DNA of 64,000 nt from Vicugna vicugna (taxonomy: Eukaryota). The notes under the pieces are model-generated. The model was given only the letters and a program-made list of their open reading frames with translations. It did not search any database and had not been told where the DNA came from. The stretch covers positions 1,488,001 through 1,552,000 of the forward strand of contig MU058919.1 of assembly GCA_013265495.1 (NCBI GenBank). Reading direction: 5' to 3'. This document shows positions 14,231 through 64,000 of the stretch, piece after piece; position 1 is the stretch's first letter, and each line of letters opens with the position of its first letter. Made by a program: the position numbers and the translations under genes.

Positions 14231-14234
14231 TGCC

Positions 14235-21628: not shown

Positions 21629-21631
21629 GCG

Positions 21632-36650: not shown

Positions 36651-36689
36651 GGAAATTACTTACGTTGATATACAAGTGTTTGCCCAGTT

Positions 36690-38030: not shown

Positions 38031-38269
38031 CCCAGAATTCTCCTGGGACCTCAGTTTAGCATGTGCCTCATCCCGGCTAACAACTTACACGTCTGTCTCT
38101 CCCAGGCCAGGACTGGGGCTGATGCACACCCCCTAACCCCCAGGATCGTGCATCCAATTGGAGCTCAGCTTAAGTTGCCAGGACTTAGACAATATGTACA
38201 GCCGGTGAAGCTAAAATTCTCCTTTGGAAAATTGTGACCCACCTTTCAACCCCCAAGCAGCAAAAAGTC

Positions 38270-39408: not shown

Positions 39409-39560
39409 TAGGGGCTGGTAAAATTCTCTTAAAAGGCCCGACAGTAAACATTCTCAGTTTTGAGAACCACGTGTCTCTCTGGTAGCACGAAAGCAGCCGC
39501 AGGGAACAGTACACAAACAGGCAAGGCTGTGTGCCACTCAAGCTTTATTTGCAAAAAAGG
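39409..39560 (+). mobile_element. MER58A-like hAT-Charlie MITE
   Basis: aaaggcccgacagtaaacatt...gtagcacgaaagcagcc...ggctgtgtgccactcaagctttatttgcaaaaa follows the remembered MER58A consensus. Confidence 0.8.
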
Positions 39561-40689: not shown

Positions 40690-40790
40690 ACATGAGCTTG
40701 GCTGCCACTCTGAACCTCAGTTTCTTCTTCTGCAAAATGGGAACAGCAATCCTCACTTTCCAGGATTGTAATAAAGACAACATGTAACTA
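40690..40790 (+). mobile_element. MIR
   Basis: ctctgaacctcagtttcttcttctgcaaaatgggaac. Confidence 0.8.
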
Positions 40791-41028
40791 CACAAACACA
40801 AGCCTTATCCCTGGTCCAGAGTGCAAGGGAGCATGGGGACACGCAGGCCCAGTGTAAGTGCACTGCCACACGTGGCAAGAATCATCAGTGTTATCATTTA
40901 CATGTTGACCAAAGTTTCAAGGAGTGGGACCCAGGCCACATGAGGTGGAGGGCTCTGGCGAAGGGTTCTCAACATGAACCAAGCTGTCCTCATTCCTGAA
41001 TAGAAGGGACAGTGTGGGCAGCAGGATG

Positions 41029-41067
41029 ACCAGGCAGGTGACCCAAACCAGGCAGGTGACCCAAACC
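41029..41067 (+). repeat. Perfect 18-nt tandem duplication ACCAGGCAGGTGACCCAA x2
   Basis: Copies at 41029-41046 and 41047-41064. Confidence 0.95.
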
Positions 41068-43313
41068 CCATGGTCTCACTGCTCAGGAGTGTGGCCTCTG
41101 GCTTTCTTGGCTCTTAAGAGGGAAAAAAGAAGCCATTTCTGACTCAGTTCACTTCCTTAAAGGCAAATTTGGTCATCCTCTTTTTTCCTGATTAACTTCG
41201 CTGTCTGCTGAGGGAGAGGGACCGCTCACCTGAGGGGCCTCACAGGGGTCAAGTCAGCCAGCAGGCACCCCCGCCCAGTCTGCACCAAGCCGTAGACTCA
41301 CAGGTCTGTAGGAACCAGGCAAGGAATTCCCTGAAGTCTCTGGGCCCAAGCGGTTCAGCCTGCATGGCTCCCAGCCCCGCCTTCTCCACCAAGGGCCACC
41401 AGATATAGGAACACAGCCTTCTCTCCCTGCCCTGGGGTGCTCCCTGCACCCCTGCCCCTAGCCAGACTCAGGTTCCAAACCCCACCATCCTGTTCATCCT
41501 GTCCTTGGCTCCCCACTGCACAGAATAAGGCCCCAGCTCTCCAGCTGGCTCTCAGGCCTGTCACGCTCCATCCCAGCCACGATCCAGCCAAACAGGTTAG
41601 CTTCTTGTCCTGGGATCATCTTTCTGCCATGTCTCTCCTCTCCACTCCAGCTGAGGCGCAGCCTGAGCTGTGGCTGGCGCACCATGCCCAGGCCCACCAG
41701 AGAGCTTCTCTGCACCCCCGCAAAGGGGCCGAGCCCTGTACACGTCAGGGAGAACCCACCACGTGCCCACGGTTCCTACGGCCAGACTCCCGGAACGCTC
41801 GGGCGAGGGCACCAAGTGTCAGTGCGTGTCTGTCCCGCCTTCATCTTCTTACTGAACCCCAGCAACGGCCACCGTGGATCCTACCTAACAGGTAAGGAGA
41901 ACGAGGCTCAGAGGGCAGAGCTGCGAGTGCTAGTCACACTGCCCAGGTTTCCGTGTGACGATGTGTCCATGTTGCAGCCTCCAGAAGGCCAGAGCTGATG
42001 GTCCTGTCTACTGCTGCAGCCTGGGAGCCCACAGGGGCTGACACACAGCCGGTGCTTGGTAAGCGGTGGCCGAATGGAGGGACGAGTCCAGATCCTCGGA
42101 GGACACGACCACTCCATCGGCTTGGAGCTGGCGGCATTGACGCGGTGCTCCCACCTGACCCCTCTGTCACCTGCAAGCTCCTTAAAGGTAAGCACAGGGT
42201 CTCACGCACGCTGGTCTCCCCCGCGGCCCCGGTTCAGGCAGCTGTACACAGCTGGTACTCAGTCAATACGTGCTGATTTGAACCAGCTCACAGCGTCGTT
42301 GCTGCCTGGAGTCTGAGGGCCTAGAAGTTTCCCGTGGTGGGCGGGGTTATGTTTGAAGTTCCCAGGCTGTTGCAGCTGTAGGCCCCACCTTCCTGTAAGC
42401 CTCTCCTGGCAGGGGGCACAAACTAGAACCACAAATAGAACTTTCCAGAAAAACTGTGGCTAGGAGGCTGCCATGCCCCAAGGACAGGACAGCTCTGGAA
42501 CAACATTCTGCCTCGGCTGTTCCACACCTGCCCTGGCACTGCTCTGGGATCAAGCTCATTGCTTGAGTTCTGGGTGACGCGTGGCCCACCACCAAGGGCA
42601 GGGCCTAGAACGGGTCAGCTGTGCAGGGCCTGGCTCACGTGCTTGCTCGGGGGGCGTATGGGTACAAGTGCACCACCCAGTCATCGAGTGCAGAAGTGGC
42701 CCAGGGCTTGTGGCACCACAAAGCCTATCTCGGCACCCCCACCCAGACACCGCGAGAAGAGCCAGCCTTGCTTCCTCGTTACACCCCAGCTACTGCCACC
42801 CCTCTCCCCCAGCCCTGCCCTGGCCACACACCAGGAACAGCAAGCAAAGTGGGGCTGAAGATGTCCAGTAACTTTAGTAGGAAAAGAACACCCTAGAGAA
42901 GAAAGTGGGCTCTCAGAATAAGGGCGACCCCTTCCCCTCCCCGACCACAGGGGTCACAGCAGGTGACCAGGATGTCCAGGTTCCGTGAGAGAGCTTCCAA
43001 ACAGTCCATCACTCAGGCCTCCCAGGCTTGCTCTTCCCTGACGCTGGTCCTCGGGTAGAGAGAGCAAGCCCTGCGGAACCCGCACGTCAGAGCAAGGCCT
43101 CTCGCCAGCTCCTCCTTTACTGGCCGGCACTAGGGCCTCGCGCAGGACAGGGTCTGAGTAAGTGGCAGAGCCGAGCCACTCAAACCACGGCTGAGTCCTG
43201 GTCCCAGCCCTCATATCCACACCCCAGAGCCTCCCTACCTGCCTGCCTGCCTGTGCTGTGAGCTCCAGGGGCTGACGGCTCAGCCACTTAATGCAATGTG
43301 ACCTTGGGCAAAC

Positions 43314-43590
43314 ACACTGTCCACTACAGGAGCCACCAGCCACGTGAAGCCACTAAGCACTGGAAATGAGGCCAGTCTAAACTGAGATGTGCTACAAATG
43401 TAACACATGCCCCGACCTTGGAAACTTCGTATAAAAAAGCACGTATCTCATTAATGATTGATTTCTTTTGATTGCATGTTGAAATGACAGTGTTAAATAA
43501 AAGATATTATTAAATTAATTTCACCTGTTCCTTTTTTCTTTTTAATGTGGCTGCTAGAAAATTTAAATTTCTGTAGTTCACATCTGTTTC
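43314..43590 (-). mobile_element. MER33-like hAT element inserted into a plus-strand MIR
   Basis: ccagccacgtg...aagcactggaaatg...ctgagatgtgct...attaatttcacctgtt...taatgtggctgctagaaaatttaaa. MIR halves lie on both sides (gtgaccttgggcaaa before; cctctaaaatgg after). Confidence 0.85.
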
Positions 43591-43944
43591 CACTGCATGA
43601 CTCAGTCACCTCCTCTAAAATGGATACGATGCACGCACAGGGCTGTTTTGAGGAGAACGTTCAGTAGATGAGTTCCTTCTGCAAATGTGCTGCCACCTCA
43701 CTTGCCAACAGTCAGCAGCCCCACAGCTGCTGCCTCTCATGCCACCTGTGTGGTCAGAGGCCACCCCCTGAGCCCCCTGGGTCCCCAGGGCTGGGCAGGG
43801 CCACCTGAGGGTGGAGTAGGGGAGCACCCGGCACTCCCCACCCTCTGCTCCAGCCTCCCAGCCCTTCCTCAGGCCTCCAGGCAGAGTGCTGCTTCCTTCA
43901 CTGGGCTCTCCATCACGCTAAGAACAATGACTTCAAGGTCACAA

Positions 43945-44165
43945 ATAACAATAAATCAAAAAAATCATAATGACGATAATGGTGACAACATCCATCCCAG
44001 GGCCAGGGTTCCCCGAGGGCACACCGTGCGCCAGGCCTGACCCTGGTGTTCTCACAAGTTCAATACTCACATCATGCAGAAGAGGACACAGGGGCCCAGA
44101 GAGGGACAGTGACTTGCCCAGTGCCACCCAGCTGGTGAGTGGTACACCAACACTCCATGCCAGGC
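43945..44165 (-). mobile_element. MIR
   Basis: gaagaggacacaggggcccagagagggacagtgacttgcccagtgccacccagctggtgagtgg. Confidence 0.75.
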
Positions 44166-47100
44166 CCATCTGGCCCTGGAGCCCAGAGCCCTCCCAGGAG
44201 AGACCCAGGCCAGGCCCGCCTCTCCACTTCCTGCCGTCCTAGCTTTGGGGCAGACGCAGGCGCACGTATTTGCCCACAGCTTCCCCAGCTGCATCATGCT
44301 GAAGTTCTGGCGTCTCTGCTGAGTGACAACCTCACACCATTTCAGGTGCCATCTCCTTTCTCTTGCCAAATGAGGAAAGCTGCACAATCAGCCCACATCT
44401 GCTAAAACGCCTGCCCCAAACACACTGCGCTGGGCCGCTTCTGCCCAGGTGGTTTTGTCCCCACAGAAAAGGGTCTTTTCATCCACTGGCTCCCCGCCTG
44501 CATACTCGTTCCCATTTGTATTTGCCATCTATTCTCGGAAAATTCCACTGTGCAACACTGTTCCAGATTACAGTGAGACGGAACTTCTCTAGGTGGATTA
44601 GGCCTGCTTAAAGCTGGTCCCAGCTATCAAGGGGCTATGGGGAGGCTGTGCTTGCCCAGAGTTGGAAGCAGTTAGAAGCATCTGGATGACTGTACCACAG
44701 CACTGAGTCCCGGGCAAGATCCGTCCTTCCACAGGGGACACATGATGCTCCAAGACAGAATGGGAGGACAAGAGAAGACGAGCCAGACGGCCCACGAGGG
44801 CCCTCCCCAGTCTCATTATCTCCCAGGGGTTCCCACATGAGAAAGAGGCAGACAAGAAGTCTGGGGTGACAGGGCGAGGAGAGCGCCTCATGTGAGCATG
44901 AGCACAGCCCTGGTCTGGCCGGGCCGCCTGCACAGCAGACCCTCAACGCCAACTTGCCCCTTATTTGTCAAGTCAGCCCAGTGAGGGCTTTGCTAGGGAT
45001 CTTCCTGCCGGGACACACAGGCCCACTCCTCATGCCTCCTCCCCCAACACCCAGGCGTGCCCATCATTTTGGAGGGAGAGCAGGACTCCAGGAGGGGAAG
45101 GAGACGAGGGCCCAGGGGCTGCATCCAGAACAGTCTGGCTCGGGGTTAGGGGGGTGCGGCCAAGCCCTGGGCTTGGGCAAGTGCAGGACTGGCTGTGACC
45201 CCCCTCTCCCACCTGCCAAGACGAGCCACTCACGATGAGGGGGGGTGGCAGGGGCCAGGGGCTTAGAGATCTTCCAGTAAATCACAAAAATGGGCATCAA
45301 AGGCTCTGGGTTGGGCACTAAGAGGATTACTCCAGATTGTGGACATGTCCATCTGCAGAATGTGACTGATACTTCCCGGGCACAGCCCCACGGCACAGCA
45401 GAGCAAACTGCAGGGCTGCTCCGCCTTGTGCTCCAGCCGTGTATGATGGAAGGACCTGGGACAGGACAGCCGGCCGCACTGCTCGGGCAGAGCTGAAGCA
45501 ATCTCCAGGGAGGCCCTGGTGCCAAACCACGGGGCTCCTGTAAGCCCCCGGTGCCCTGGTTTACGAACCAGAAAACTCACAGCTCAAGAAATGCGAAGTC
45601 TGTCCAAGGGCTAGAAGGATGAGCCTGTTCAGGCAGTCTGATGTTAGAACTTCAAGGCTACTTCATCAGGGTGTGGGCCCAGTGGGTACAATAAATAACA
45701 TCTATGCTTCCTGAGGCCATTCTGGTCAAAGCGGCCCGTGGTGAGAAGGCCACCGTCCCCGCCTCACCTCCAGGGAGCCTGACGCCTAGAGCCGGTCCCA
45801 GACCCGCCTGGGCCCGTGGTTCGCCAGCGGTGGCGAACTCACCCCAAAGGGGCCCTTCGGAGAGGCGGTGGCCCACGGGCTGTGGGCGCTGAAGAGTGGC
45901 CAGGGCTCCTGGCACCGCTCTGCCCCTGGGCAAGTGAGCAGGCAGCTAACACTCAATTTTCTTCCTTGAAGAGGAGGGAGAGGGTTCCCCCCAGGTGGCT
46001 GAGGGACCACACACCTGAGGGAGGGCCCCTGAACAAGCAACCCCCGCCCCTGCCACAAGCACAGGCCAGAACAGTTAGGGGTTAGGACCCCGATTCCCAC
46101 TGCTGCCCTCAGCCAGGTGGAGGCAGCTTCCAGCAGCAGCTGCCTCCATGATACCTGGTGTTCACATCTCGGCTTCTTGGTTCTTCAGAAACCTGGTTAG
46201 CAACTGTCCACACTGAACTCTCTGGACCTATGGGGTGGTTTCTGTCCCCTGCAGGGCCCCAGCTGATCCAGGGGGCCTGCCCCACTCTCCACGCACAGAG
46301 CTCTGGCAAGGGAACAGCTGCAGCCCCCCATGACCACCACCCACTCCATAAAGATTAAACGCATTACAGGACCTGCACTGTGTCAGGGGAGGGGCAGGGC
46401 CTGGTGGCCTTTAGTGACATATTACTGCTGTGAGCTCACTGCTGTGCTCACAAATGAAGCTTCTGGCGGTTGCATTATATTTTGGAACCAACTACTTCTT
46501 TTCCAAGACAGAAAAGAAAAGGCTACCCCTCCCTGTCCCCAGAAGGAATTACCCAAGGGCCCTACTATGCCAGACTTTCAAAGGAGGCACTGTTAGCCTT
46601 CTCGCCGTAAACAGGCAACTAACACCCACCCGAGTCCAGTCGAACCAAGCTCCTGCTGGCCTGGGGAGGCAGCAAAGGGCTTGCCCTCCTGCGTGGCGTT
46701 TGCTTTCTCTAGTTCTCGACTGTGGCCTGAAGCTGCAAGAAAGGGCGGTAACTCAGGATGGCTGATTCCGCAAAAATGTTATAGATAAATGGCTCCTGTC
46801 AACAGCGGACTCTATGTGATGCCACACTTAGGACAACGGAGACTTTTTGTAAAAGGCAAAACGAGCTTAATTTCACCCTGTGTGGGTGCCCAGGAAAGCC
46901 AGCAGTCTGCACGGGATAAAGGCACAGGCAGGTGCCCGGCATGTCGGCTCAGGGCCTGGCTCGTAATTAATCACACGTCCATCTCAGTGACCCCACTCCG
47001 TGCTTTCCTGTCTCCAGTCCCCCTGAGGCTCTCTCAGACCCACAGGCTCACCAAGGGCCTGGAGCTCCTTCCCGGAGGCATCAGCCCGACATCCCCAATA

Positions 47101-49029
47101 AGGAAGCAGGAGTAAGATAGGGAACGCTGACATCCTCCCCGCCCCTTCCCCTGCAGCCTTCCAAGCTGGGCTGGGGTCACTGGGCTCTGTTAGGAGATTC
47201 ACAGAGGCCACTGCAGGCCCCTCATTTTCTGGAGATGCTGCCTCAGCCATTGTAAACAGACCAGACGCAGGACAGCTGAGATCAGATCCAGCATGACAAG
47301 CCTTCAAAGCTGTCAGAAAATCCTCCTGCGGCCCCAGCCCGCCCCGGCCTTCTCCAGCCGAGTCCAGAATGGGGGCCCAGGGTCAAGTGCAGAAGGACAG
47401 AGAAGCTTCAGCAAAGGAGTCGGACACATGGAGACGGGGGTGACGAGGAAGGTAGGAATGGAGTTTCCACGGGGTGGGAAAGGGCAGCCGGGGCTGGCAA
47501 AGCACTCGTGTATAATAAGGGTTTGGAGGTGGGGCACCTCCGGTTTCAAGGACACTTGTGAAAACAAGTCAGTCATGGTGACGAGCTACACTTCACTTCT
47601 ACTGAGAAGGCGATCAGGAAGAAATACAGGTAAAGTGAGGGCTGCAGGCAAGAAAACAAGAGGGACTTACAATCAGCAAACTCTAAAAACAGGGTAGCTT
47701 AAAGAAAGTAACCTTTGGAAGTTAGGGTGATGGATTCTCAGCCCAGGGAGGTCTGTGGCTGGGGTGACTTGGAAGCTCATTGACAAGATCAACTCATTGG
47801 CTGGGCCTACTGGTCGCACCTCCAGAACGTCTGAGCCCCTAACAGGAAATCAATGTGTCCACTGCCCCAGCCCTGGTCTAGCTCACCGTCATGTCTGCCA
47901 ACAGCCTCCCGCCTCCCCCAGACCCCTCAGTCCATGCTGCTCCCTGAAGCCTGAAGGAGCTCTGGGGGAAGGGGGTGCTGTCATTCCCCTGCTTAAAACT
48001 CTCTACTGCTGCCCCTCTGCACTGCGGATAAAAGATAAGCCTCTTCAGAGGACCTACCAAGAAGGCCCACTGTGCTCAGGCCCCCTGGCGCCCTCACCCA
48101 CCCTGCTCCAGCCACGCTGGGGCTCTTCCCAGCCCCTTCCTGACTCTGACCTTTGCCGTCCCCCACACCCACCCCACCCACACTCTAATACTTAGCTCAA
48201 ATGGCTTATTTCTCTGGTCACACGATTCCAATGTGCTGTGAGAACATTCTGGAAACCTGGCCTCTTTTAAATGGTATCAGGGACCAGAGACGCCCAGCAC
48301 ACACAGCATCTAGGCAGGGCACTGACAGCCACACCAGGTTCCTGGTCATTCACTCTGCCACCCAGTGCAAGACTTGGGCCAAGATGCTCTGAGCTGCTAC
48401 AGGGAGCTGGAGGGGCTCCCATCTGAGCAACTGGCTTATGCACGAAGCAGAGGCCCCTGCTCCAGAAAACCTCGTGTATCCCCAGAGCTTCATGGCCTCA
48501 CATCTTCTCAAACACCCTTCAGCTCAGAAAGGCTCTCAATTAAAGCATGGAAAATCACCAAGTGGCATTAAAAGCTGCCTCCCTGGCATGTCCCTAGTTG
48601 AACTCCTTCTATTTTTCTTTTCCCTGGGAGATCAAAGCTATTGTGTCAACACTCGGCCCTGATCCGAGCAACCTTAAGCAGATAGCTTATGCAACCTGGT
48701 GGCTGTGCCTGGCGACAGCAAGGAGTGATGCAGGTGTTCCTCAGATTATGAGAACCCCCATCAGGTGGTTCCACGGTGCTAGTGACACACCTCTTTCTGA
48801 GAGAAGGGAAAGACTGGAGACGGCTGAAACTAGTCTCCCAGCCCCGGCCCCACCTGTTCCACTGCTGCAGGATCCGTGCCTTGCAGTGACACCGCCTGTC
48901 CCGGGGGTGGCGAGCCCAGCTGACCGCTGGAGCCCAGGAGATGGGCCACAGGGTGCGGCTCTGTTGTAAAAGTATCCACCCTGGGAAGACCCACACTGCG
49001 CGACTCCTCCCCTCACCCGCGAGAAACTG

Positions 49030-49325
49030 GAACCGTCATCCCCATTTCACAGACAAGAAAATGGAGGCTTACAGAGGGTGACTGGCCCGAGGGCCCACAG
49101 CTCAAAAGTGGCAGAATGGGGACCTGAGCCCCTCCGACTCCAGAGCTCACACTTTCACCTCTACACCCTCTGTCAGCCGCCTGGAAAGGGCGCCTGGGGT
49201 GGATCACGGCAGCAGGAGGGGCAGTGAACCCGGAGTCAGGAGGCCCGGGTTCCGGCCTTCCCAGCCTCCTCGGCAGCCACGTGGCTTTGGGCAAGTCACC
49301 AACTCCCTGGACTCTCCCCTCAAGT
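49030..49325. mobile_element. Two MIR fragments (minus ~49030-49140; plus ~49220-49325)
   Basis: atccccatttcacagacaagaaaatggaggc; ggagtcaggaggcccgggttcc...gtggctttgggcaagtcacc. Confidence 0.75.
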
Positions 49326-51614
49326 GAGGGGGGAACAGGAGCAGAGATGGCAGGTCAACTCGCAGGCTCTAGTTGCCGAGGGGAGGGTTCTACGACTTCC
49401 TCTGGGTGCAACCAGAGAGAGCGCCACGACTGACCAGCAGTGTCCGTCACGAGCCTGGGAAGAGCCGCCCTGCTCGGCGCCCACAGGCTGAGGGGCCAGG
49501 TCTTAGAGGCGTCTTCCTTTCTCAAGCCCATCCTGCTTCCTCATCAGAAGCAACGATCCGCATGAGCCCATCGTGGTTTTTGCCTTTACTTTTATTTAGC
49601 ATTCACTTCACCCCGGTTGGAATTCCAGGGCTTTCCACGACTGCCCGGCAGAGATCCTCACACCCGTCTGCGTTCTGTGCGGCAAACGGCGATGCACCTC
49701 TGAATTCCTCTGCTAGCTGTCAACACAGTTCCCTAGGCCAGCAGGAAGGGTGCTCAGGGTGCAGGGCGGCAGGAACCGGAGCAAGTGAGGTGGCCGGCTG
49801 CTGGCAGAGGGCACAGAAGGTCATAAAGGTTTGGGTACGCCGGGCCTGAGCCCAGGGACCCAGCCCAGAAAAAGCACAGCTGGCCTGCAGCGGCCAGGGC
49901 TGCCTGAGAAGGCAGTGCAGCCAGTGAGGGTCACCCCACGGCGGCTGGGGGGCCCACCCCTCACTAAAGCCAGTCCCCCACCCCCTACCCCTGGCACACA
50001 GAGCAGGAGGCTGACCAGAGGGAGCCTCACCCAGGGACGACCTTGCCAGCAGAGAGGCACGAGTTATTGACGAGCATCAGTGACAAGCCTTCTGATGACT
50101 TCCTGCATCGACCCCCCTCACCCACTGGGGCCCCCACCGCCCTGGCCAGCCCCCTCTCCTGGACACATCCGCTGGACCACAGCTCTCTGTGTAGTTTCTA
50201 CCTCACGCTTCTTTCCTACCCCAAACTGCACCCGGCCAGCTTTCGTGGGCCCCTCCAACATCTGCTAACACAACAGTTGCTGCCTGTTCTGAGGCCTGCT
50301 CTGGGAGGTTCAGGGACTCAGTGTGTGGGCAGCTGCAATCAATCAAACCTCTGTTTCAGCATCCCGACCCCTCCTCACAAATGTCTCCCTTCTGTCTGAA
50401 GCACTGCTGAGAAATACAATTTGTTGCTCTTTCAAACTGACCGGCTTGGAGTTAAAAATACAGCAAGGACTGTGACACCCAGGGGCATGCCATTCATGGT
50501 AATCTTTAATTGTTGCTTCTTCTGAAATCTTGGCCCCCACGCATGTGATCCGTGTCTAAATGGCCACGCACAGCCCAGATCTCGCCGGGAGTCAACCGAT
50601 GCTTGGTGGTTGAACCAGGTCTCGAAAAAGCAGTAACTAATAATGTCAGCGAAAGTCCCGCTCATAAACTACTCGTACCCTCAGGCTGGGCCCTGCCCTC
50701 GAGGACACATGCTGTCATTTTGCAAAAGGGAGGCGGCTGTGGCTTAACATAAAACACCAGGCCGGAGGAGCCTCGACAGACCATGCGAGGAAAGCTGCCG
50801 GGAGGTCAGCAGGGTCAGAACCGGCTGCATGGGGCAAGGCTGACCCCGGGCCGCCTTCAAGCATCTTGCTCTGCGGACCCAGAGCTCGCAGATGCAGCTA
50901 CAGGGAGGGAGGGCCTTTCTGAGCCAGGTCCTTGCGTCATCCCTCCCCACAGGGCTCTCCTCCGTGCAATCACTCTCCCTCACTCAGGACCCAGCTCCCT
51001 AACCGTGAGCTAGGCACTCGGGTTTTAAGGAGACCAAAAAGCAATTTCTAACCCCTTCCCGGCACTGTGTGCTGGTGGCCTCACTGCTGCGAGAGACAAG
51101 AGCCACTTGGCCACCAGCTAGACACCGGTGCCCCGGAGACCAGGCTGGGGAGGTCAGGACATCTGGAGGGGCGTCTGGTGGGCTCCTGGGGCCACTTCCA
51201 CCCTGGTTCCACGGGTGACAGACATGAGACAAGAACGCTCACCCGGCCTCCTCTGGCAGGTGGCGATTCTGATTCTGTCACCATTTCACAATCCCCTGTT
51301 TCAAGCCCGAGTTCACCGCAGGCTGAGCAGAGCCAAAGGGCAGGCCTCCTTTCCATTTTCAAAAGAAAAGGATGAGGCAAGAAGAGGAACCAACAAGAAG
51401 AAGTAAATGGCAAGGACAGAAAAGGGGGGCTAAATACAGAAGGAAAAGATGGACAAGTAAAGAATAGGGGAGTCTTCAGAATGTCACCCTCAAGGCCCAG
51501 TTCTGCCTCTGGAGTTGCCCAGAATGAGCCCACGCCATCCCTCCCAATTCCTGTAGTTGTCACAACAGCCAGTAACTGTCAGCTCTCGCCGGGCCAGTCT
51601 GTGCACTAGGTGAA

Positions 51615-51785
51615 GTGTGCACATGTGAGTGTGTGTGTAGATTAAGATACATACACATATCAACAGATATTACGGACACACACATTTATACACGCACATC
51701 CACATATAGATATACACGTACACATACATGCACACACACGGACACGTGAACGCATTTGCACAACATATGCACACGCATGCACACA
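51615..51785. repeat. Degenerate (CA/TA/CG)n low-complexity tract
   Basis: Mostly alternating purine-pyrimidine sequence, e.g. acacgtacacatacatgcacacacacg. Confidence 0.85.
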
Positions 51786-54700
51786 TTTCCCCTATTCCTC
51801 CCAACAGCCCTACGTTGATGATGGTGGTGGCAGTGGTAGTATTATCTGCTGCACAGAGATGTTAAGCAGTTTGCACAGGGCTGTCAGCCTCCAGCACCAT
51901 TTCTGAGGCCTTCTGATTGGTCAATATACCCCCAGATGCAGATCTAAAGGTGAAGACCATGTTCCAGAAGGGCCTATTTCCTCAGGAGGGGCCAGGATGG
52001 ACACAGCCTGAGGTCACGTGTACCTCTCCCACCCTCTGCTTCTAGCTTTTTTTTTTGTAAGTTTTAATGCTTTGCAATGAATATCAACTACTAATTTAAT
52101 AAAAAAGTCTTCAAGTCAAAAGGTGGGGAATGGCTGCTTGAGGCGATAAAGACCCTTTTTACAGGCCTGGCCTGTACCCTCCGGGGGCTGCTTGCTCAAG
52201 AAGGTGACACGGCACCCAGAGGAGAGGGTCCAGGGAGGGGTGAGAGGCAGCCTCAGAGCAGGGCCCACCCCAGTACCCTTGCCCCCTGTGTGCAGGAGGC
52301 AGGGCCCGGGACCTCAGAGGGGCTGGCCTCCTCTGCCAGTCTGACTCAGGGGTCTTCCCCTGGTCTCTTTTCTGCTGGAAGTTTGGGGAGACTCTGACTA
52401 CCAGCCACTCTCGGGGTGCTGCTGGGGCTCACACCGACCCCGGGGGGTCCCAGCCCCGGTCAGTGCCTCTGGAAGCCAGGGTTTATCAGAACCCCTGTCA
52501 TCCCAAAGGGCTGACTGAGATGGCACTCACTCTGCACCTTCAGCCCAAGTCTTTCATGCACCTGAGTCCAGAGCCCACGCACACAGGGGCACCCTGCCAA
52601 CGATGCTCATGTGGAAAGCCCTCCTCCCAGGTAGGAGACTATATAAACCAAGATCAAAAGACCCGTAAGACAGAGAGTCCACCACCCAGCTGGAGGACAC
52701 ACGGAGCAGTGCCAACTCTCGACACAAGCCAACCTTTCCACAGACTTGCAGACCCACTCGTTTCCCAGCAACTGCAAATGCAGGTAAAGCCACGTGGAGG
52801 CTAGGGTCTGGGGACAGTTAGTCTCACACCAGCCGCCATCTGGCCGCGAGCAGGTCCCTACAAACCAGTGACACTGGCTCACGGGGTGCCCAGGCACAGG
52901 GCCCTGCATGTTCCAGGCTACATCCAGGGCTCCTTTCAAATGCACAGAGGTTGCCCTGGGCTTGGCTTTCAAGGCTCCTAGAGAAGCAAGGCCCATCTCC
53001 TGAGGCCATAAGTCATCTGAGGGGGGAGAGCCAAAGCAAGCAGAGCCCACGGGAAACGGCTGGCTGGGTCTGGAGGCTTGGCAGGGGGGGCGGCTTAGGG
53101 TCCACCCATCCCCAGGGCGCTGCCCGCAGCCCTTCGGCCCACAGGCTTCCCAGGGGCCCCTTCTCCGCTCTCCCTAGACTCTGCCCTCCCCAGGCCTCAG
53201 CCAGGGAAAGGCAGGCAGAACCAGGGCAGCCTCCTCAGGCTCTTGGAGGCCTGCCTGGAGCTGATGGAGCAATCCATACATCTGGGCACAGCCCCACCGA
53301 GCAATATATCTTTAAATGGTTTCTACCCAAGTGAGGACGGGAAATGTCTCCAGTGATGCCAGGGGTGTTATTCCAACTTGCGGCTAGTAAAATATAATAA
53401 CACGTGTAAGTTGTTTTTATTACCTATCTAGCTTATTAGCTAATAAAATAAGCTCAGCATTAAAAATTTAACTGAAGCCCTTTCTCGTGCACCCAGAACT
53501 CAAGACTCTGGGTTTCCTTTCAGAAGTCAACAAATCTGTCACCTCTCCAGCATTCTTACCTATTTAAATTTCTCCAAGAAGGAAAATTCCACTCGCCTGT
53601 CCAATGTCCAGGAAATGTGTTCAATCGCCGCCTAGCTAGGAAAGCACTCAGGGGAAAGCAAGGGATACACCTGGGGCAGCCATGTGATAGAAGGAAGGGA
53701 AACTGGAGATGAGGGCAGAGGGTGGAGTCTGCCCAGTCCTCCCGCAGGCTCTTCCCCAGGCGAGCCCCACCGGACCGGGGAGGCGGGAGCACCACCAGCT
53801 GGTCCTCCGACTGCCCCAGACCAGGGCCTAGGCTCTTAAGCAAAGTGGCCAGAAAGCCTGGACTCAGGGGCCAGGTGTGCTCAATACTGGAGATACCTGC
53901 ACCTCTTCTTCTGGGGAGACCTCAAGGCTGGGAGGAAAACCAAGAGGAAAGAGAAGGAAACTCCATAGACAGAAGCCATATTTTCATTCTAAAAGGAGGC
54001 CTGACTGAAAAAAAGCACTGGCCACTGAAGGAAGGTGGTGGAGCCCGCCTGAAAAGGAGTGGACGTGACAAGCCTGTTTGCCCAGATGTGCGCACATGCT
54101 CGTGAGCAAGGCCAACCTCTCACCAAACCGGCCTCTGTGACCCTCCAGCCCAGCCGTGACTGATGCTCATGTAACAAGACTAGAAAGGACGATAATCAAA
54201 CCGTGGCCCTGAGCACCTAAGGGCCTCCTGGACACAGAACCCGGAGCGCCACCTTCTGCCCACCATATCCACCTGTCCTCGGGTGGACAGCCACAAGGGC
54301 CAGCCCTGCTCCCTGGGCCTCACCATCACACGCTCTCATCCTTGGGATTCCCCAGTAAAGAAACAAACGCAGGCAACGCTCAGGCGTGGAGACTGTCCTG
54401 ATCGTGGCGCATTAACTCCAAGTTCCTCATTCAAATCAGTACCTGAGATCAGAGTTAGCAGGAGGCAGGGATCCGAGACTGAGGATAAAGTGCATGTGAC
54501 AGAGGCATGTGGCCAGAGGCCTCACCTATAGTGAACAGCAAGGACGATTACATAGGTGCCACTGACAAGTGATCACAACTTCTTGATGGTCTCACATTTT
54601 CAGCAGTTTAACCAAAAGAATAAGTGCTTCCCACCATTTCTCGCTTTCTAAAACCATCACCCAGGGCCCTGACCTCAGGATCAGCGTAATCCAAGTGACA

Positions 54701-55093
54701 CTGCATCCCGGCCTGTGCGAGCACTTCTTGGGGCGGCTGCAGGGACGGGTTCCTGGGAGAGAGGCTTCAGAGAACTGCCAGGAAGGGGGTAACCAGTGTG
54801 TGGTGATGCTGGTCTGCCCAAGGCCCTGTCCGTCCCCATCTGTCCGCTCTTACACCACTAGCACTGGGTTCACAGGGAAAGAACAGTTCTGATTTTAAAT
54901 GGAAAGAAAAAGACCCTTTACAAAGTGGGGCTTGATTTTCTCCTTCTCGGAATAGGATTTTAAAAAGCAGGAAATTAACCCATTCCTGGGGGTGTCTGAA
55001 ACTGACCCCCTGCACTTGCCTGGGATGGGCCAGGAGCAGCAGAGGCTCCGAAAGGCACCTGCAGCACCTCTCAGCACCTTCTGGGGCTCTTAC

Positions 55094-55872
55094 CTGTGCC
55101 ATCTTGGCAAGGTCCAGGGAAGGCCTCGGCTCCTGCACCTCTTCGGGGCGCCGCCGCTTAACGCCGACCTTCTTGTCGTTAAGGACACACGGCTGGGAGC
55201 GGCTGCGGGAGAGCCCGCTAGAGCGTCTCCCCAGCTCTGGCGTTGAGGCAGGTGTGCTGTTGGCTGAGGGTGGACAGTACTCCGCGAACGAGAACTGCTC
55301 GTGCGAGCAGGAGAGGGACCGTTGCATGTCAAGCCGGCCCCCACCCACCAGGCTCGGGTTGGGGCCCCAGATGTCTCTCGCCTGTCCACAGATGGCGGAG
55401 CCGGGCACCCCTTGGCAGGGCTGACCACCGAATTGGTGGTGAAAGGCCGCCTGGTCACAGGGCGAGGAGAGCACGTTGGCCCGGGAAGGGAGGCTGAAGC
55501 TGGAGCTCCGCTGCATGGTGCTGAAGCCGTTGGAATAGCGCTGGACGCTGCCCCCGCTGTAACAGCGCCTCTTTTCCACAGGCGTCCAGACTTTGGACCC
55601 CAAGGGCCTCCATGATGTTCGGCAGCTGGACATCTCGTCGGAGAAGGACAGTGACCGGCACTGGCGCTTGCTGGGGGGCGCGGAGGGGTTCCCGTTGTGG
55701 TCACTGAGGCTGAGGTCTTTGATCAGGTTGGTGACCGCGCAGGCGGTGGCGGCCTCCCGGTGCCACAGAGCGCTGTCCTGACACTTCTCAGGCAGGCACT
55801 CCCAGATGCTGGCGCTCGGCTGGTCAATCTGAAGAGGGCACTTCCTGTCCAGGTCTCGCCATCTGTCATTTT
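55094..55872 (-). CDS. FAM53B: FAM53B large internal coding exon (779 nt; exon 4 in human numbering)
   Basis: Translates as (E)NDRWRDLDRKCPLQIDQPSASIWECLPEKCQDSALWHRE...PPSKRQCRSLSFSDEMSSCRTSWRPLGSKVWTPVEKRRCYSGGSVQRYSNGFSTMQRSSSFSLPSRA...RSRSQPCVLNDKKVGVKRRRPEEVQEPRPSLDLAKMAQ, which I recognise as FAM53B. Acceptor tttatgaaccag|AAAATGAC (AG at 55874-55873, phase 1); donor GCACAG|gtaaga (GT at 55093-55092, phase 0). The provided ORF 54767..55633 covers the last 180 codons and then runs into the intron. Confidence 0.97.
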
Positions 55873-55959
55873 CTGGTTCATAAATGACAAAGAGAAACAG
55901 GATTTGAGAAGGCCTTCATGCCAGTCCTCTATCTCCTCACCAAGAACCCGTCTTAAGCA

Positions 55960-56090
55960 GGAATTTAGAGCTAGAAAGGCCCTTAAAAGCCATCCAGGGC
56001 GACCTCGATTTACAGATGAGAAACTGAGGCCCAGAGAGGGGATGTGAGTTCCCAGGTGCTGAGTTAGACGCAGAGCAAGGCCTAGGATCC
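55960..56090 (-). mobile_element. MIR ~90 nt upstream of the exon acceptor
   Basis: agaaaggcccttaaaagccatccag...tttacagatgagaaactgaggcccagagaggg. Confidence 0.85.
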
Positions 56091-57929
56091 AAGCACTGCC
56101 CAGGATGCCTGGCACGGCTTTCTCTCCAACGCACCGTCCTGCCTCCCAGGAAAGTCCACATCACTATTTTTCACCCAAAATGCTTCTCATTTTCTAGAAG
56201 GGAAACTGACTTGTCCCACCCCCCCCAACCCGGCCGGCAGCAGAGTCGGGTGACATGTCGGTGACATCCCATGTCAGGGCTCTGGGGCTGGGACTCAGTG
56301 CCCTGGCAGAAGGCCATGACCAAAGACGACTCAGCCATACTTTAGGGGCTGGAGGTGCTGCCAGGTTAGTTCATCTGAAGCCCATCTTGAAAACACTTGC
56401 TGACAACAGAAACTGAATATTTCCTTGATTTAAGTCCCCTCCACCAAAATGCTCCACAACATCAGCAACCAACAAGAGCTGCCAATCACTGAGGACGTTC
56501 CTTGCATTCATTTGCTTTCTTGCCAAAATAGAGAAAAAAGCAGCTAAAATCTATAGGGACAAGCCTTGGGCTGCAAAGACTTAAGGGAACAATTTAAACT
56601 TACGTTATCTGGGTCTCGACTTGAACACAGGAATAAATAAGCTCACCCTGCTATGAAAAGCTGACTTGGCACTTTGAACCTTTATTTTAGTGAAGTATTC
56701 AATAACTATTTATTGTTTTTCTCCTACGCGGAGCATTTTGGGCGAGCAAAGATAAATTTGACATGGTTCTTGTATTCAAGTTCACGATACGAAAGCGAAG
56801 TTAAGAAATACGCCATGCTCCCAGAGATCGACGTATTAGCATGTTTCGATTTTTTTCTATTCTATACATATTTATAAACGGTGCAAATGTGAATACAGAG
56901 AGAAATATGACTTGAGTCAGTCTCAGTAGAAGGAGAGCAGTGAAACCTGAAATGACGTTCAGAAGGTATGTCACGCACACTGATTCTCAGCACAATTACC
57001 ACGCGTCCACCACGGGCGCCCTGGGTGGTTGCCATCACTGCCAGACGGGGAGAATGAGGCTCGGAGAGGTTGAGTAAGCGGCCCCGAGCCACACAGCTAA
57101 CAAACGATGAGGGACTGGCCCAACCCGAAGTCCAAGCTGTTCTCACTTCACTGCAGCACTGAGGGAGCCACAGGGGAGCCTGACACTGGCCCTGTCCTCA
57201 GGGCAAGGACCAGTCGTGCAAGACAAGCCATGCCTCAGGAAACTGTGACGTCACCCACACAAGTGCTCCAGGCAGCTGGGACTGCAGAACCAGCTCCCCT
57301 ACCGGTGGCCACTTTTCCAAGGGCACTGAGAGACACACCCAAGGGACCGACCCCAGGCTGAGTGTCACAAGCAGCAGCTACATGACAGGTTCAAAGGGAG
57401 TGACCGATGAGGCCCAAAAGGAGATTCACAAGCCCAAGGAATTGCCAAATCAGGGCTAAATGTGACCACCTTCCTCCAGGGCGCCCTGTGTCGTCTGCAG
57501 TCATGAGACGCGCAGAGCCTGAGGGGGCCGGGACCCTGGGCCGGGGACATGGGAAGAGTGGTCCAGAGGCTGTTCCCACGGGAGGGCCTTAGAAGCTGGA
57601 GATGCAGGAGAGAGATTTGCCTCAAGCCCAGCAGGCCAGCTGGGAACAAAGCAGGTCTGTCACTAAACGTCCAATTCATCTCATCCCTGAAATCTTCCCA
57701 GGCCCTGGCGCACGGCAAGTCTCCAGACGTGCTCCTTCAACTGAATTTGACAAATCATTACCAGAAGTTACCTTCTTGCAAATAGCATTTATGTTGTTCA
57801 AAACAGGCCTTCACTATCCACTACTCCTCGAATATTCGCCATTCTTTTCTAAAAGAGTATCTTGCCAGCAGTTGAAAGTTCAGCAAACTAACACAATACT
57901 AAATTAAAACACTGAAGTAATACTAAAGT

Positions 57930-58385
57930 AAAAATTTTAAAAATATAAACCCACATCGACTGAGTTGCGACCAACTCTGTTATCCGATTTAGAAGAAAAG
58001 TTATCCTCAGAAAAAAGTGGAGATTTATGTTTAATGATGTTCTTCAAAATGATATAAGCGATAGCAAAATGGTAAACACAACTAAAATGTCCCACAGTAG
58101 GGGGCTGGTTAGATGAAGTATCAAGGAATAACATGGAGCATGAAAAAAGCAGCTTCAAAGAATATTAATGATGTGAGGAAATGTTAATGATGTAATACTA
58201 AGCATAAAGAAACAGGATATAAAACTGTATAGACAGCATGATTCTTATTTAGTAGAACACATATGCTGTGTGGGAAGACAGAAAGGAATAAACCTAAATG
58301 TTCATGGCCAATCGGCAGAGAGCTGGTTGATTTTTCTTTTTGGTTCCCGAGAGTTTCTGTGTTTTCTATAAGGACAATTATGTGG
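57930..58385 (+). mobile_element. L1ME-like 3' end
   Basis: atagcaaaatggtaaacacaactaaaatgtcccacagtagggggctggtta...aacaggatataaaactgtatagacagcatgatt. Confidence 0.75.
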
Positions 58386-59484
58386 AGAACCTGACCACCA
58401 AGCCCACAGGTGCTGTGCCAGGCTCAGGGCCAGGCTCACAACCATCCTTCTCTGGGCTTGTTCCTTTGGTCTTTCAGGAAGTTCCCATCAAACAACGCTG
58501 GCCACCAACTTTTCCTTCTGGACAAGGCACTGAGGCGCCAGATGGGCCACAAATGTGGCCGACTGAGGAAGGAACTAGGGGACCCAACCAAGGGCAGTGA
58601 GGGCCCCAACTTCCAACTAGAGTCCACTAGAGAAGGTCTCTCTCCAGGCCCTGGGAAACCCGGGGAATTAAGAGATTGATCCCACCCTCAGAAGGTACCA
58701 CTTTCTGTTCCATTTTTACTTCACTGCCCTGGAAGCTTCCCCATCTCCAGGGGAGAACAAAGGGGGAACTGGGAGCCAGTTAACAAGCTCAGCCGTTCTG
58801 TCTCCATCATTCGGCAGTGCCATCGCTCTCTAGCGGCCATCTTGTGATCTCGGTGCTTCTTGACTAGACCCCTTGGGCCTCCCTACTCCAGTCCCAACTC
58901 CTTTCTGCCGCCAGAGAACTTTCTGAGGTCATGGTCCATCCCCTCCCACAGCTTCTCATTGCCCCCTCAAAAAAATGCAGACATTTCATCCTGGCATCCA
59001 GATCCCCACCTACTCATGGTCCCCCTACAGGCCCTACACTCCAGGCACACCCAACCTGCCGTGACATCAAGAGTCAGCCCAGAATCAGACAGAGCCAAGA
59101 TCATCCCTAAAAATGCCTGAGGCCATAAAGCCACTCCTCCTGGTTTTGTGTACACAGTCCTGAAGAGTGACTCTTCTGCACCAGCAATTCTTCGTGAAAC
59201 TGAAGTTTAACAAATCGATTGGAGGAACGAGCACAGGTGCTGCCTGCGTGCAGAGGGCTGTGTATTCAACGTGCTTTTAGGTTAACTATCAAATCCCAGT
59301 GGGACTGGTGTCGGAGGGCTAATTCTATCGTGTTCCTACTTGCCTACAGGAACTACTCCACTCTGTTTTAAAGAGTAAGCCTCTATGACCTTAGTATGTA
59401 AGATGTCTCTGTCGTAGGGGGGACTAAAACAGTCAGTTCTCAACTCAGTCCACGGGTTAAACGTGAGCACGGCAGTGGCTCTGC

Positions 59485-59815
59485 AGCTTCCCCTCAAACA
59501 TCAGTGCTTTCTCGCCTTCACCCCTTTGCAGAGGCCTGGAATATAATTCTCCTGCTTTATCCTTCTACCAGTCTCTCACTCACCATTTGAGACCCAACTC
59601 AAACATCACCTCCCCTGCAGACATGTCTTCACATACAGGCCCTTGGGCAGCCCCAGCCTTTGCCTAGACTTCCAATCATATGGTTCGTGTTAACTGAATC
59701 CTAATTATCTGTTTATTTGTCTCCTTCTTCTACTGAGCTACAAGTTCTAGTACACGGTCCCGACATGACTCTCCAGCACCCAGTACCGAGCCTGGCACAC
59801 AGCCGACCTCAGGCG
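59485..59815 (+). mobile_element. L2 3' end
   Basis: cccaactcaaacatcacctcc...tgtttatttgtctcc...ccagtaccgagcctggcacacag. Confidence 0.8.
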
Positions 59816-60489
59816 GGGATGGGGGGAGGAAGGAGGGGATGACGAGTGCGGAGAAGAACAACAGAGCAGATGGTGGGGGTTCACTTGGTCTTGCCTGTCT
59901 CTTGCCCCTGGCGCAGGTAATCGCTCCTTGGCCAGGCAGATCCAACCTGGGCTGTGTCTTCAACTCCCCGCCCCACCGGAGCCACGGATGGCTGTGTGTG
60001 AACTAGCCAGGACACTGGCTGGCACAGCAACGTCTAAGACCCTTTGAAAACACAAAGCACTGCCCGACACTGAGCACTGCTGTTGTGTGTCAACACCAGC
60101 CAGGTGGCCACTTGGTCTGTCTGTGGGGCAGAGAATATTTTAATTGTTTCTATCTTTATCGCTTCAAGAAGTACAATATATGAAAAGTAAAAACAATCGA
60201 GGCTATGTTTAGCCCTTGTGTTTTCCCCCTTCACTCAGGGAACAGAAGGCGATTTGTTGGGTCAGGTCAGCAGACAAAAGAAACAGGAATAGAAGCTCAT
60301 TTTCAGTGGCAAACAGCCCTGAGCGTTCGGCCCAACGTCACGCTGCACGAAAGGCCCCGGTAAGGCTCCAAGGAGAGGATACCGGACGCCCCCGCCCCTC
60401 CATTCAACATCACTTCTGTACAAACAACTATAACTCTTTCAGAAGTGACAATGGCCGTGGACCCAGGGAGTCCGCTGAGCAGGGCTCAC

Positions 60490-60625
60490 TGGTGTGGGAA
60501 GGGTGCGGACCTGGGTTCGAGCCTCAGCTCTGAAAGTTACTGACTCTCTCAGAGCCTCAGTTTCTTCATCTATCAGCTTGCAGAGCTACTCTGAGGACGC
60601 AGCGGCTGCCTGGCACAGGGCCTGA
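60490..60625 (+). mobile_element. MIR
   Basis: cctgggttcgagcctcagctct...gagcctcagtttcttcatct. Confidence 0.75.
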
Positions 60626-60714
60626 GGGGACACACAACGAGCTCTCAGTGACAGTAGCCACGGTGTGACAACACTGGAGAAGGCCTGGGTAGGTGCGCCT
60701 CGGCCCTTCTACAA

Positions 60715-60920
60715 GCGGGTACCAATCTGGCTGTGTGTTCTGCACGAGGGCTTCTAAAAGTGCAGTTTGGGGACTAACTGCAGGAGTAGCCTCTGGGGAG
60801 CTAAATGCAGAGTCCCAGTCCCAGTCCCTGACCTAATGAATAGAATCTCTAGGGGGAAGAACCTGCATTTTAATAAACTCCCCGGGTTATCTTAACACAA
60901 AGTTGCTGAGAACCACTGCT
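60715..60920 (+). mobile_element. MER5-family hAT-Charlie MITE
   Basis: gaatagaatctctaggg...cctgcattttaataaactcccc and the terminus gagaaccactg. Confidence 0.75.
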
Positions 60921-61435
60921 CTGGACTGCAGGCCACACAGGGGCCTGGGCCCTCAGACAGCTCTGTGGCAGCCCCGTCAGACCGTCCAGCCACACCAGGA
61001 GGCTTCTGCAGCGCTGACGATCCCAGTCTCTACAAATCCGGATTCAGAACACCACTGAAAGGTGGTGTTCTTTTTGCTTTGGGCCAGTAACACAAAGCAG
61101 AATTATGGAGAAGGACAACTGCCCTTCAGGTACCTCAAGGTCCATTTTCACAGGAGGTGGTGGGTTGCACAGTATGTTCTGGATGGAGAGCCAGTGGGAA
61201 AGGCCTGAGAAGAGCCAAGAGTCTACATGAAGGGGATAGTGTGAGACATGCTGTGGCCTACAGCTTCTCGGGGAGGTTCCCAGCACCAAGACTCTGGCAG
61301 ACATGGTATGGCCCGGGGACACTGGGATCAGCCCCTGAAGTTCTAGGCAGTCCCCCTTACTTTAACCTTCAGGAACAACCAGAGTTTCTCCACTTCCCTG
61401 CTGAGCCTAGTTCACAAGTTTGAGATTATACATAG

Positions 61436-61473
61436 GAGAGAGAGAGTGAGTGAGTGTGTATGTGTGTGTGTGT
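61436..61473 (+). repeat. (GA)n(GAGT)n(GT)n compound microsatellite
   Basis: Read directly from the sequence. Confidence 0.85.
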
Positions 61474-64000
61474 AGTATAAACACACCCGGGGCTTTTTCT
61501 ACAAAGGAGAGAGAAAACCTGGCAAAAATACACAAAAATCACATGCACACCATCTAGTCTCTCACAGATGGACTGACAAGATGACCTCCAAGGGGTCTCT
61601 CAAAGCTGAGGCTCCATGTCTGAGCTTGAAGTTTCTGGAAAGACTTCTACTGGCCTGGGGCACACAGGAGAAGCCGACGACACCCACACAGGCGGGGACA
61701 GGAACTCAGATCCCCCGACTGCACTCACAGGCTTTGGTCCTGCGACTCCTTGGTTAAAGGGGAACAGAAGGCTGCTGGGTGCACAGATCTAGAGCTCAAA
61801 GAAAGAAAACGCCCAGAGGAGCACAAATAGCATTTGACCTCAAATGTTCTTATTTCCATTTTTGCCCTCAAACTTGAAGGGAAATTCCCAGGGGCCCAGA
61901 TTCTGAGTGGACTACAAGCTTTCTTACGCTCAAAAGATGGAGGAGATTTACAGCCTCGGATCTCTCTATGCTGTGTTTCGAGGCTGCCTTATGGTGACAT
62001 AACCACAGCAGAATGTGGTTTCTAGAAGAGGTTAAGCACCTAAAGCACAGACCCGAGACGCAAGGCTCCTGCAGCCGCCCAGGCCAGGGCAGCAGGCCTC
62101 CAGCCAGATCGAGGCTGGCTGACTCACTCCTGGATTTCACACCTGTCTCCTTGTGCTGACGTCAGTCTGCCTCCCCTGCCCTGTGGGCTGGGTTCTGCTA
62201 GCTCGGCCTCAGGGCTGCAAGGACTCCATGCTTGATTTCGGGGTAGAAGCTCACCAGCCCTTTCAATGGGAAACTCAAGAGCGCTGAGGTGGCTGTTTGA
62301 AGGCAGCTTTATCACACTGGTCTTACGAAAAGAACACAGGTGGGAAAACGTACAGGGCAATGACGTGAGCTGCCCCACAATGGCATCATCTACTTTGAAA
62401 CGAACTGTACAGCCCCTGGCCCACAGGGGTGTCTCTTTTCCTGGATCACCAGGGTGGGGACTCAGTTCACAGCTGTGTCAGGAAGACAAGGTTCCCGGGC
62501 CTTGCCTGCTGAAGGTTCAGCCTCTGGTTGTGCCCTCTCACCTGCAATAAATCATAAAATGTCAGCTGCATCTTGGGTTCAGGGACAGCAGCACAGGACA
62601 CCAAGCACCTGAGCCAAGGCATGAGGACAAGGGTCTAGGATGGCTGGAGAGAACACTCCACTGGCCCCACTGAGGGAGGGCTGGCTCGAGGGGCTCTGGG
62701 AGAAGCCCGAGAGCCTGGTGAGTTCAGAGTACTTGCCAGGGTCCTGCTGTCACCAGCCGGGTGGGGGTGGCCCATGGCAGCTACCAATGCTTCTGCGAAG
62801 TCTTTGCTCTTATAAAAAGATGCCCACAGTGGGATCCCCAAACAGACAGCACAGGGGTATAAAAAAACAAACCCTCCAGACTGGGCACTGGCAGTGTAGA
62901 CCTCAGTTTCCCAATCTGAGGAAGCACAGACGGAGGCCCTTTCAGCTCTGAACAGACTCCCTGCTCTACCCCTGACCTCCAGGGGCATTCAGAAACATAC
63001 AGGAAAAAGCTAGTACTCACAATGGCAACAAAAACTCCGAGGAGACAGAAAGGTCAGTTTTACCCATCTCCTTCGGCTTCCTACCCGGGCCGCGGGCACG
63101 CACGGAGCATGGGAAATATGCAGCTGCCTGCCATCCACCTCTAAACCAACACGCGCAGCAAAGCTGGGCGCCATTATACACATCAGAAAATTGTCAGCTG
63201 GGAGAGCTATTCAGGAAACTGTCAATAAATTCTCATTAACCGTTAATTAACTTACACCCCACTGGGATCCTTGCTGAAGCTGGGAAAGAGCATGAGCAGA
63301 TATCCCAAGCACAGTACTCAGCTCACGGGGCGTCACAGCACTCCCCGAGTGACTGGTGGGGAAGCCGAGCTTCAGAACAGTGCCATGTCTCGCCTGTGGA
63401 CACACAGTGGGCAAACGCAGCCTGCAGTCCCAAGGCCGCGCCCTTGCAGTTGGGCCAGGCTGCCTCCTGACGACCATTTCTCCACATGGAAGGCAACCTG
63501 GCGATGCAGCATAGCGGGGGTGCCCAAGGCCAGTCTGGTAGCTGCCATTCCCTATCCTCTGGCACCACTAGGACCCCCTCCCCAGCCCATGGCAGGCGAG
63601 CCTGGGTGAGAAGGCTTCCTTTTCACTTGTCACCGTAAACAGCCATCATGTGCCAACGACACTTTGCACCTACCTCCATTCTGCACTTTATTTCAGAAAC
63701 ACTGTCTAAAACCAATCAACGGTGCAAGGAAAAATGGGAAGCACTCTGTATGGACAAATCTTGCCCTATTTTAGACATGGAAAAGTCACACCTATGACCA
63801 CAATAAATCTAAATGAATAAGTAATTACAAGCAAGTTAAAAAAAATCACACCTATGCACATCTGTATATGGGTATACGTTAAAAAATGAAAGCAAGTCTT
63901 ACTCTAGCCCATTTTGGTTAATAATCAGTTTCTCACAGGAGGCCCTGGCCCAATGATGATGTGCAGGACGGCCATCTCCGAGAGACGGGAGAAAGCGGCC

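Follow-up and report, generated by a model that had tools for sequence, protein, structure and literature searches.

The junction-crossing reading frame of the large FAM53B exon in alpaca is probably a by-product of exon phase and codon usage

The 779-nt stretch studied here is a normal, already annotated exon, the large coding one of alpaca FAM53B (Simplet), and it is spliced linearly to the last exon of the gene 49 kb downstream. Joining the exon end to start, as happens in a circular RNA, creates an open reading frame (ORF) of 229 aa that leaves the FAM53B frame at the join and adds a tail of 49 shifted-frame residues. We regard this ORF as very probably an arithmetical by-product of the exon, with an unselected tail that would be a cryptic, drifting peptide if it were translated. 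It is equally likely, in our judgment, that anything translated from the circle has no selected function. Annotation of the exon and the gene already exists, and the circular ORF corresponds directly to its published human orthologue.

All positions refer to the window, which is the whole 64,000-nt stretch of DNA that was analysed, and the features are collected in Table 1. When recomputed by script on the minus strand, the length of the exon was 779 nt, which is 2 mod 3. Its main frame is stop-free for 259 residues, all of which match FAM53B of Vicugna pacos (P0001; 100% identity) and, therefore, the window contains alpaca FAM53B. Identity to the camel proteins was 97-98%. The Pfam FAM53 profile (PF15242) matched P0001 with E=4.7e-125 and residues 125-304 with E=9.3e-72; it spans residues 1-304 of the protein, of which the exon contributes 46-304. 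The last coding exon begins at position 6078 behind an AG, and the protein ends in ...ELDIEQIENN. Residues 1-45 had no match within the 64-kb window by tblastn, and in relatives the large exon sits 19.6-25 kb downstream of the gene start. The exon structure of FAM53B is conserved in its AG/GT bounds, its phase and the splice to the last coding exon. The bounds, including the acceptor context ...accAG/AAAATGACAG, are shared with 10 other genomic loci. The preliminary description of this DNA had reported an exon of 779 nt, not a multiple of 3, followed by a very long intron, and this was confirmed, with an intron of 49,015 nt.

Table 1. Positions of the FAM53B features and of the hypothetical circular reading frame in the window
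Feature	Position	Strand	Evidence or remark
Internal coding exon of FAM53B, 779 nt, residues 46-304 (candidate for circularising)	55094..55872	-	Sequence, frames, protein identity, tblastn, Pfam PF15242
Splice acceptor AG behind a pyrimidine-rich tract, ...tgaaccAG	55873..55874	-	Sequence
Splice donor GT, CAG/GTAAGA	55092..55093	-	Sequence; kept in other genomic loci
Downstream intron, 49,015 nt	6079..55093	-	tblastn and AG before 6078
Last FAM53B exon, coding part (residues 305-424 and stop); normal partner of donor 55094	5716..6078	-	
Upstream intron, partial, >8.1 kb; first coding exon beyond the window	55875..64000	-	
Start of the hypothetical circular ORF: 180 main-frame codons, FAM53B residues 125-304	55094..55633	-	Translation; matches FAM53 profile positions 125-304
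Hypothetical tail: 49 shifted-frame codons (55872..55726) and TGA (55725..55723)	55723..55872	-	Translation
Tail-frame AUG, 4 nt into the exon	55867..55869	-	Also starts an out-of-frame ORF of 48 codons in the linear mRNA
Example of a tail-frame peptide: MTDGETWTGSALFR			

Some observations concern the surroundings of the exon and the database entries for the gene. EEF1A lysine methyltransferase 2 proteins from several mammals are, unexpectedly for a sequence cluster, grouped with P0001 in its 90%-identity cluster. At the whale locus (L010 1-94), a methyltransferase gene lies directly upstream of FAM53B, and the methyltransferase members of the cluster may be fused gene models that chain both genes. 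Many public assemblies also contain ORFs that extend across the exon into both neighbouring introns (P0125-P0128, P0013, P0014, P0079 and others, with P0125 on 86 contigs); these are unspliced pre-mRNA or genomic DNA, which is common in those assemblies. Positions 14001-16000 of the window have a GC content of 0.43 and a strong AT skew of 0.24, inside an intron with otherwise 55-62% GC, and this segment may be an inserted repeat. An Rfam scan of the whole window gave no match.

The circular ORF would start at the first main-frame AUG (position 55633, MSSC...), run for 180 codons to the donor, cross GCACAG/AAAATG into the frame of exon base 1 and continue for 49 codons to the TGA at 55725-55723, for a total of 229 aa. 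It is the longest AUG-started ORF of the circularised exon. The predicted back-splice join, from exon end to exon start, reads GATGGCACAG/AAAATGACAG. This ORF had been described before, with its AUG, junction, stop and division into 180 + 49 aa, and every coordinate proved correct when it was recomputed. The motifs RSRSQP (residues 267-272) and KKVGVKRRR (278-286) are retained in it. The tail carries 7 K+R vs 2 D+E, and the normal C-terminal 120 aa carry 8 K+R vs 18 D+E. The earlier claims that an RSxSxP motif and a basic NLS-like stretch are kept, and that the acidic end of FAM53B is swapped for a basic tail, therefore both agree with the sequence. The 49-aa tail matched no family in Pfam.

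The tail frame has an AUG of its own near the start of the exon. Its context, AAAATGRCAG, was found in 12/12 exons compared, which follows from the conserved Asn-Asp codons of FAM53B. The 48-codon ORF that it opens in the linear mRNA (AUG 55869-55867 to 55723) covers the whole tail minus the first Lys. Since the linear mRNA has an AUG for the tail frame, tail peptides are, on sequence grounds, not exclusive to the circle. Tail peptides alone would thus not prove that a circle is translated, and junction-spanning peptides (...AKMAQK/MTDG...) would be required.

Circularisation of this exon has been reported in other mammals. A circle from the orthologous human exon has been reported as hsa_circ_0000267 (PMC11567935), and qRT-PCR confirmed the mouse circle mmu_circ_0001634 (circFam53b) in hippocampus (PMC9530360). 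In pig, the protein P0015 of an ENA assembly is identical to Sus scrofa FAM53B over residues 1-304 and then continues ...AKMAQ/KMTDGETW... for 49 residues. This tail is identical to the alpaca tail at 44/49 residues, and the join is exactly the one predicted for the alpaca exon. The assembler joined the end of the exon to its start in pig RNA which implies that reads of a back-splice or of an exon repeat were present; the join could stem from circular RNA reads, from exon repetition or from an assembly artefact. On the 1928-nt contig of P0015, the ORF passes through the first exon, the large exon and the start of the large exon again. The alpaca exon is orthologous, with intact acceptor and donor that could be joined end to start. 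It also lies between long introns (49,015 nt downstream and >8.1 kb upstream), which favor circularisation. As human, mouse and probably pig form this circle, it is probable that alpaca also produces some circFAM53B, by back-splicing 55094 to 55872.

The flanking introns contained no complementary repeats that could pair across the exon. In the window, no reverse-complementary matches at E<=1e-3 connect the upstream intron (8.1 kb present) with the downstream intron (49 kb), and inverted pairs of at least 25 nt that flank the exon are absent. Reverse-complementary repeats were likewise absent between 25 kb upstream and 10 kb downstream of the exon in wild camel. If a circle is formed, the long introns or proteins, rather than repeat pairing, would be needed to draw the two splice sites together. 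Another possible explanation is that alpaca does not circularise the exon to any meaningful extent and that the ORF exists on paper only. The lack of repeats in the window and in wild camel fits this explanation, as does the outcome of the database searches. When the 5.8-billion-protein collection was queried with the junction and tail of P0015, the sole match was P0015 itself, so a camelid junction-spanning protein was missing from it, and no alpaca or camel member of the FAM53B cluster had a junction-spanning form. The junction 26-mer gave 0 matches in the JGI metagenome contigs. We nevertheless consider this explanation rather unlikely. Horse and bat also lack complementary repeats in the flanking introns, so repeats may not drive the circle (in the other species they were few and distant), and the join has been shown in pig, mouse and human. 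Assemblies seldom preserve back-splice joins, so the negative database searches carry little weight. The junction 26-mer was also absent from the window with up to 3 mismatches allowed, which shows that it holds no genomic tandem copy.

Alternatively, the exon could be circularised in alpaca and the circle could serve as a non-coding RNA that binds, for instance, microRNAs or proteins, with the ORF being irrelevant. The circles reported in human (hsa_circ_0000267) and mouse hippocampus (mmu_circ_0001634), the exact join in the pig RNA assembly and the long introns are consistent with this idea. However, complementary intronic repeats are lacking around the exon, the sponge functions rest on human cancer-cell studies, and we saw no nucleotide constraint beyond coding. 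This makes a non-coding function in alpaca improbable.

The alpaca exon was compared with exons from 11 other sources (n=12), namely wild camel, Przewalski horse, red fox, beaked whale, wapiti, fruit bat, tamarin, prairie vole, a rodent-like cDNA, elephant and wallaby. The exon length was 2 mod 3 in all 12 therian exons. The shifted frame was open for 39-49 codons in 12/12, with the pig assembly providing a 13th species. It stopped at codon 39 in tamarin (as the review gives for human; PMC11567935), at codon 41 in vole, the rodent-like cDNA and elephant, at codon 46 in horse, fox, bat and wallaby, and at codon 49 in alpaca, camel, whale, deer and pig. The stop is, thus, not conserved. It falls at four different positions by lineage, moved by a main-frame Val/Ala exchange or by a switch between synonymous Val codons, and the last 10-20 residues of the tail vary between orders. 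The first 24 tail residues are well conserved (KMTDGETWTG.ALFRLT..APASG). An open frame in every species together with conserved first 24 residues would also be expected of a selected ORF.

A null model for the tail length was obtained by shuffling synonymous codons within each exon while keeping the FAM53B protein. In the alpaca shuffles, the median first stop was at codon 49 (P(sim>=obs)=0.54), and none stopped before codon 20. The shuffle medians for the 11 other species were 39-49 (P=0.38-1.0), and the observed length was equal to or below the median. A stop in the shifted frame requires a main-frame NTA followed by A/G, or NTG followed by A. FAM53B avoids CTA, TTA and ATA codons, and its conserved protein offers few suitable Leu/Ile/Val contexts. 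Conservation of the FAM53B protein, together with the codons it uses, therefore accounts for the lack of early stops and with it for the persistence of the ORF across mammals. Frequent early stops in mammals had been named beforehand as the observation that would speak against a coded tail; none occurs in the 12 exons, but the shuffles fully reproduce this absence. We rejected the idea that the missing early stops show selection, since synonymous shuffles give the same lengths.

Base composition gave a similar picture. Under a composition model of the exon (64.6% GC), an open run of at least 49 codons has P ~0.30. The frame of exon base 1 has one stop only in all 259 codons. Past this single stop (55090-55704, minus strand), the shifted frame is open for the other 209 codons and contains a 204-aa ORF from GTG. 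The 209 open codons after the stop show that the composition of this coding exon (65% GC) accounts for long alternative-frame ORFs here.

Position 3 of the main frame is position 2 of the tail frame, so every synonymous change in FAM53B alters the tail. Therefore, a selected tail should suppress synonymous change. Synonymous changes were counted by parsimony on the tree of the 12 species, and the overlap provided 18 usable synonymous columns. Four-fold sites had 2.0 changes/site in codons 1-49 vs 2.2 elsewhere (P=0.75), and 25 degeneracy-matched synonymous changes were observed in the overlap vs 27.7 expected (P=0.37). The preliminary description had proposed to look for main-frame synonymous constraint in the first ~50 codons and had named a normal rate as evidence against its claim; the rate there was normal. 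Summed over all species pairs, pN/pS was 1.19 in the tail frame vs 0.17 in the main frame of the identical bases. When a 49-codon segment was slid along the exon, the shifted-frame pN/pS ranged from 1.1 to 5.9 and tracked main-frame constraint, with the real tail ranking 4th lowest of 31. Between pig and alpaca, the tail differs at 5/49 residues and FAM53B over the identical bases at 1/49. Substitutions in the overlap tilted slightly to main-frame position 1, which is tail position 3 (0.61 vs 0.42 per codon; chi-square P=0.04, uncorrected). With 12 species and 18 columns, a mild constraint on the overlap may still be present. The signature of a second coding frame, that is, synonymous suppression, a low tail dN/dS and a conserved stop, was not seen among the 12 species, a number that limits the power of the comparison. 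Taken together, the evidence points to a 49-residue tail that is not maintained by selection and would drift at the neutral rate of the host-frame synonymous sites.

Within the overlap, exon codons 1-25 (55798-55872) had 10 synonymous changes vs 16.6 expected, which was not significant (P=0.11). Low synonymous change next to the acceptor could be due to a splicing enhancer, a second frame or chance.

The explanation that we favor can be put as follows. Conserved exon phases would set the exon length to 2 mod 3, and the GC-rich coding sequence would leave the frame of exon base 1 nearly stop-free. Any join of the end to the start would then read on for ~40-50 codons, and the 229-aa ORF would be a by-product of this. 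Alpaca probably produces some circFAM53B through back-splicing. The tail, if ever translated, would be a cryptic drifting peptide and not a designed FAM53B regulator.

The opposite explanation is that alpaca translates circFAM53B into a functional 229-aa protein with a basic tail that modifies or opposes the action of full-length FAM53B. The full-length protein has a part in the nuclear localisation of beta-catenin and binds 14-3-3 (PMC5403202), and a truncated form could in principle interfere with it. The ORF is intact, it retains a 14-3-3-type RSxSxP site and the basic nuclear-localisation stretch, its frame is open in 13 species, and the human product has been reported as translated (PMC11567935). 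On the other hand, the ORF is no longer than in synonymous shuffles, the synonymous rate is normal, the tail has a pN/pS of 1.19, and the stop position and the last 10-20 residues differ between orders. The human literature also describes a tumour-specific cryptic antigen. We find a functional protein very improbable for these reasons, and the modifier or dominant-negative role that had been proposed earlier was not supported, given the normal synonymous rate and a tail without sign of selection. An even broader version, in which camelids and perhaps all therians circularise the exon in normal tissue and translate a truncated FAM53B with the first ~24 tail residues as a conserved module, seems to us just as far-fetched; if it were true, circFAM53B-219/229 would be an ancient second gene product tuning FAM53B / 14-3-3 / beta-catenin nuclear import, with the end of the tail free to vary.

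Had the tail been under selection, the product would count among the very few circRNA-encoded proteins backed by evolutionary evidence, and a physiological role for the human vaccine antigen circFAM53B-219 would follow. The by-product explanation carries a caution instead: an alternative frame that is open in all mammals over a conserved GC-rich exon is no evidence of coding.

The human circFAM53B-219 is a 219-aa product of circularising one FAM53B exon, and its ORF was reported to be translated (PMC11567935). Its junction-derived part covers residues 181-219 and includes the peptides ALFRLTNRA (192-200) and RTAHYGTGR (210-218) (PMC11567935). A dendritic-cell vaccine trial has been listed (PMC12293153), and in the human literature the tail is regarded as a cryptic antigen specific to tumours and not as a physiological protein (PMC11567935, PMC12293153). 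The human facts in the preliminary description, 219 aa and both peptides with their positions, agree with the review (PMC11567935).

The alpaca tail is longer because an Ala (GCC) replaces the Val whose GTG makes TGA in primates, rodents and elephant. The alpaca codons GCC GCC ACC (Ala-Ala-Thr) stand in place of the Val-Thr of primates, rodents and elephant, whose GTG ACC contains TGA. The human exon is said to be 773 nt long, which is consistent with the 773-nt tamarin exon. The 10-aa extension had been attributed to a 6-nt difference in exon length plus loss of the human stop, and this account holds with the tamarin length and with GCC vs GTG. The tamarin exon (L015 1343-2115) is 6 nt shorter through the absence of the Cys-Gln/Arg codons after ...LPEK. 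Those two codons are retained in wallaby, elephant and all other placentals examined, and the 6-nt loss in tamarin looks like a primate-lineage deletion.

Frame-crossing ORFs of this design exist in other circular RNAs. The ORFs of circ-ZNF609, circ-FBXW7-185aa and circ-SHPRH-146aa likewise begin in the frame of the host gene, read through the back-splice join and finish with a short unique tail, and their translation is experimentally supported. In contrast, the alpaca ORF is known from its sequence alone and its tail fails the selection tests. The likeness to mouse circFam53b (mmu_circ_0001634) lies in a circle from the orthologous gene that is found in normal brain tissue (PMC9530360), suggesting that circularisation is not limited to primates or tumours. 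The mouse case differs in that the shifted frame stops after 41 codons in both rodent-type exons examined, and no coding role was reported for the circle (PMC9530360). The pig sequence P0015 differs in being an assembled contig from another species. With linear FAM53B / Simplet (PF15242), the hypothetical circular product would share the 180 pre-junction residues, which are plain FAM53B sequence, but it would be without residues 1-124 and without the acidic C-terminal 120 residues.

The human circFAM53B (hsa_circ_0000267) comes from the orthologous single exon with identical splice sites and phase. The human and alpaca ORFs have the same MSSC... start, the same 180 pre-junction codons and the same frame change at ...AKMAQ/KMTDGETW. 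They differ in the length of the exon, 779 nt in alpaca vs 773 nt, where the two extra codons are the state in all non-primate therians examined, and in the length of the tail, 49 aa vs 39 aa. Both HLA-presented peptides are altered in alpaca (ALFRLTSRA and RTALCGTGR). The circle and its translation have been shown in human; the alpaca counterpart is a hypothetical product. Of the 39 residues in the human tail, alpaca shares 32, and neutral drift of the tail fits the description of the human product as a cryptic, non-self-like peptide.
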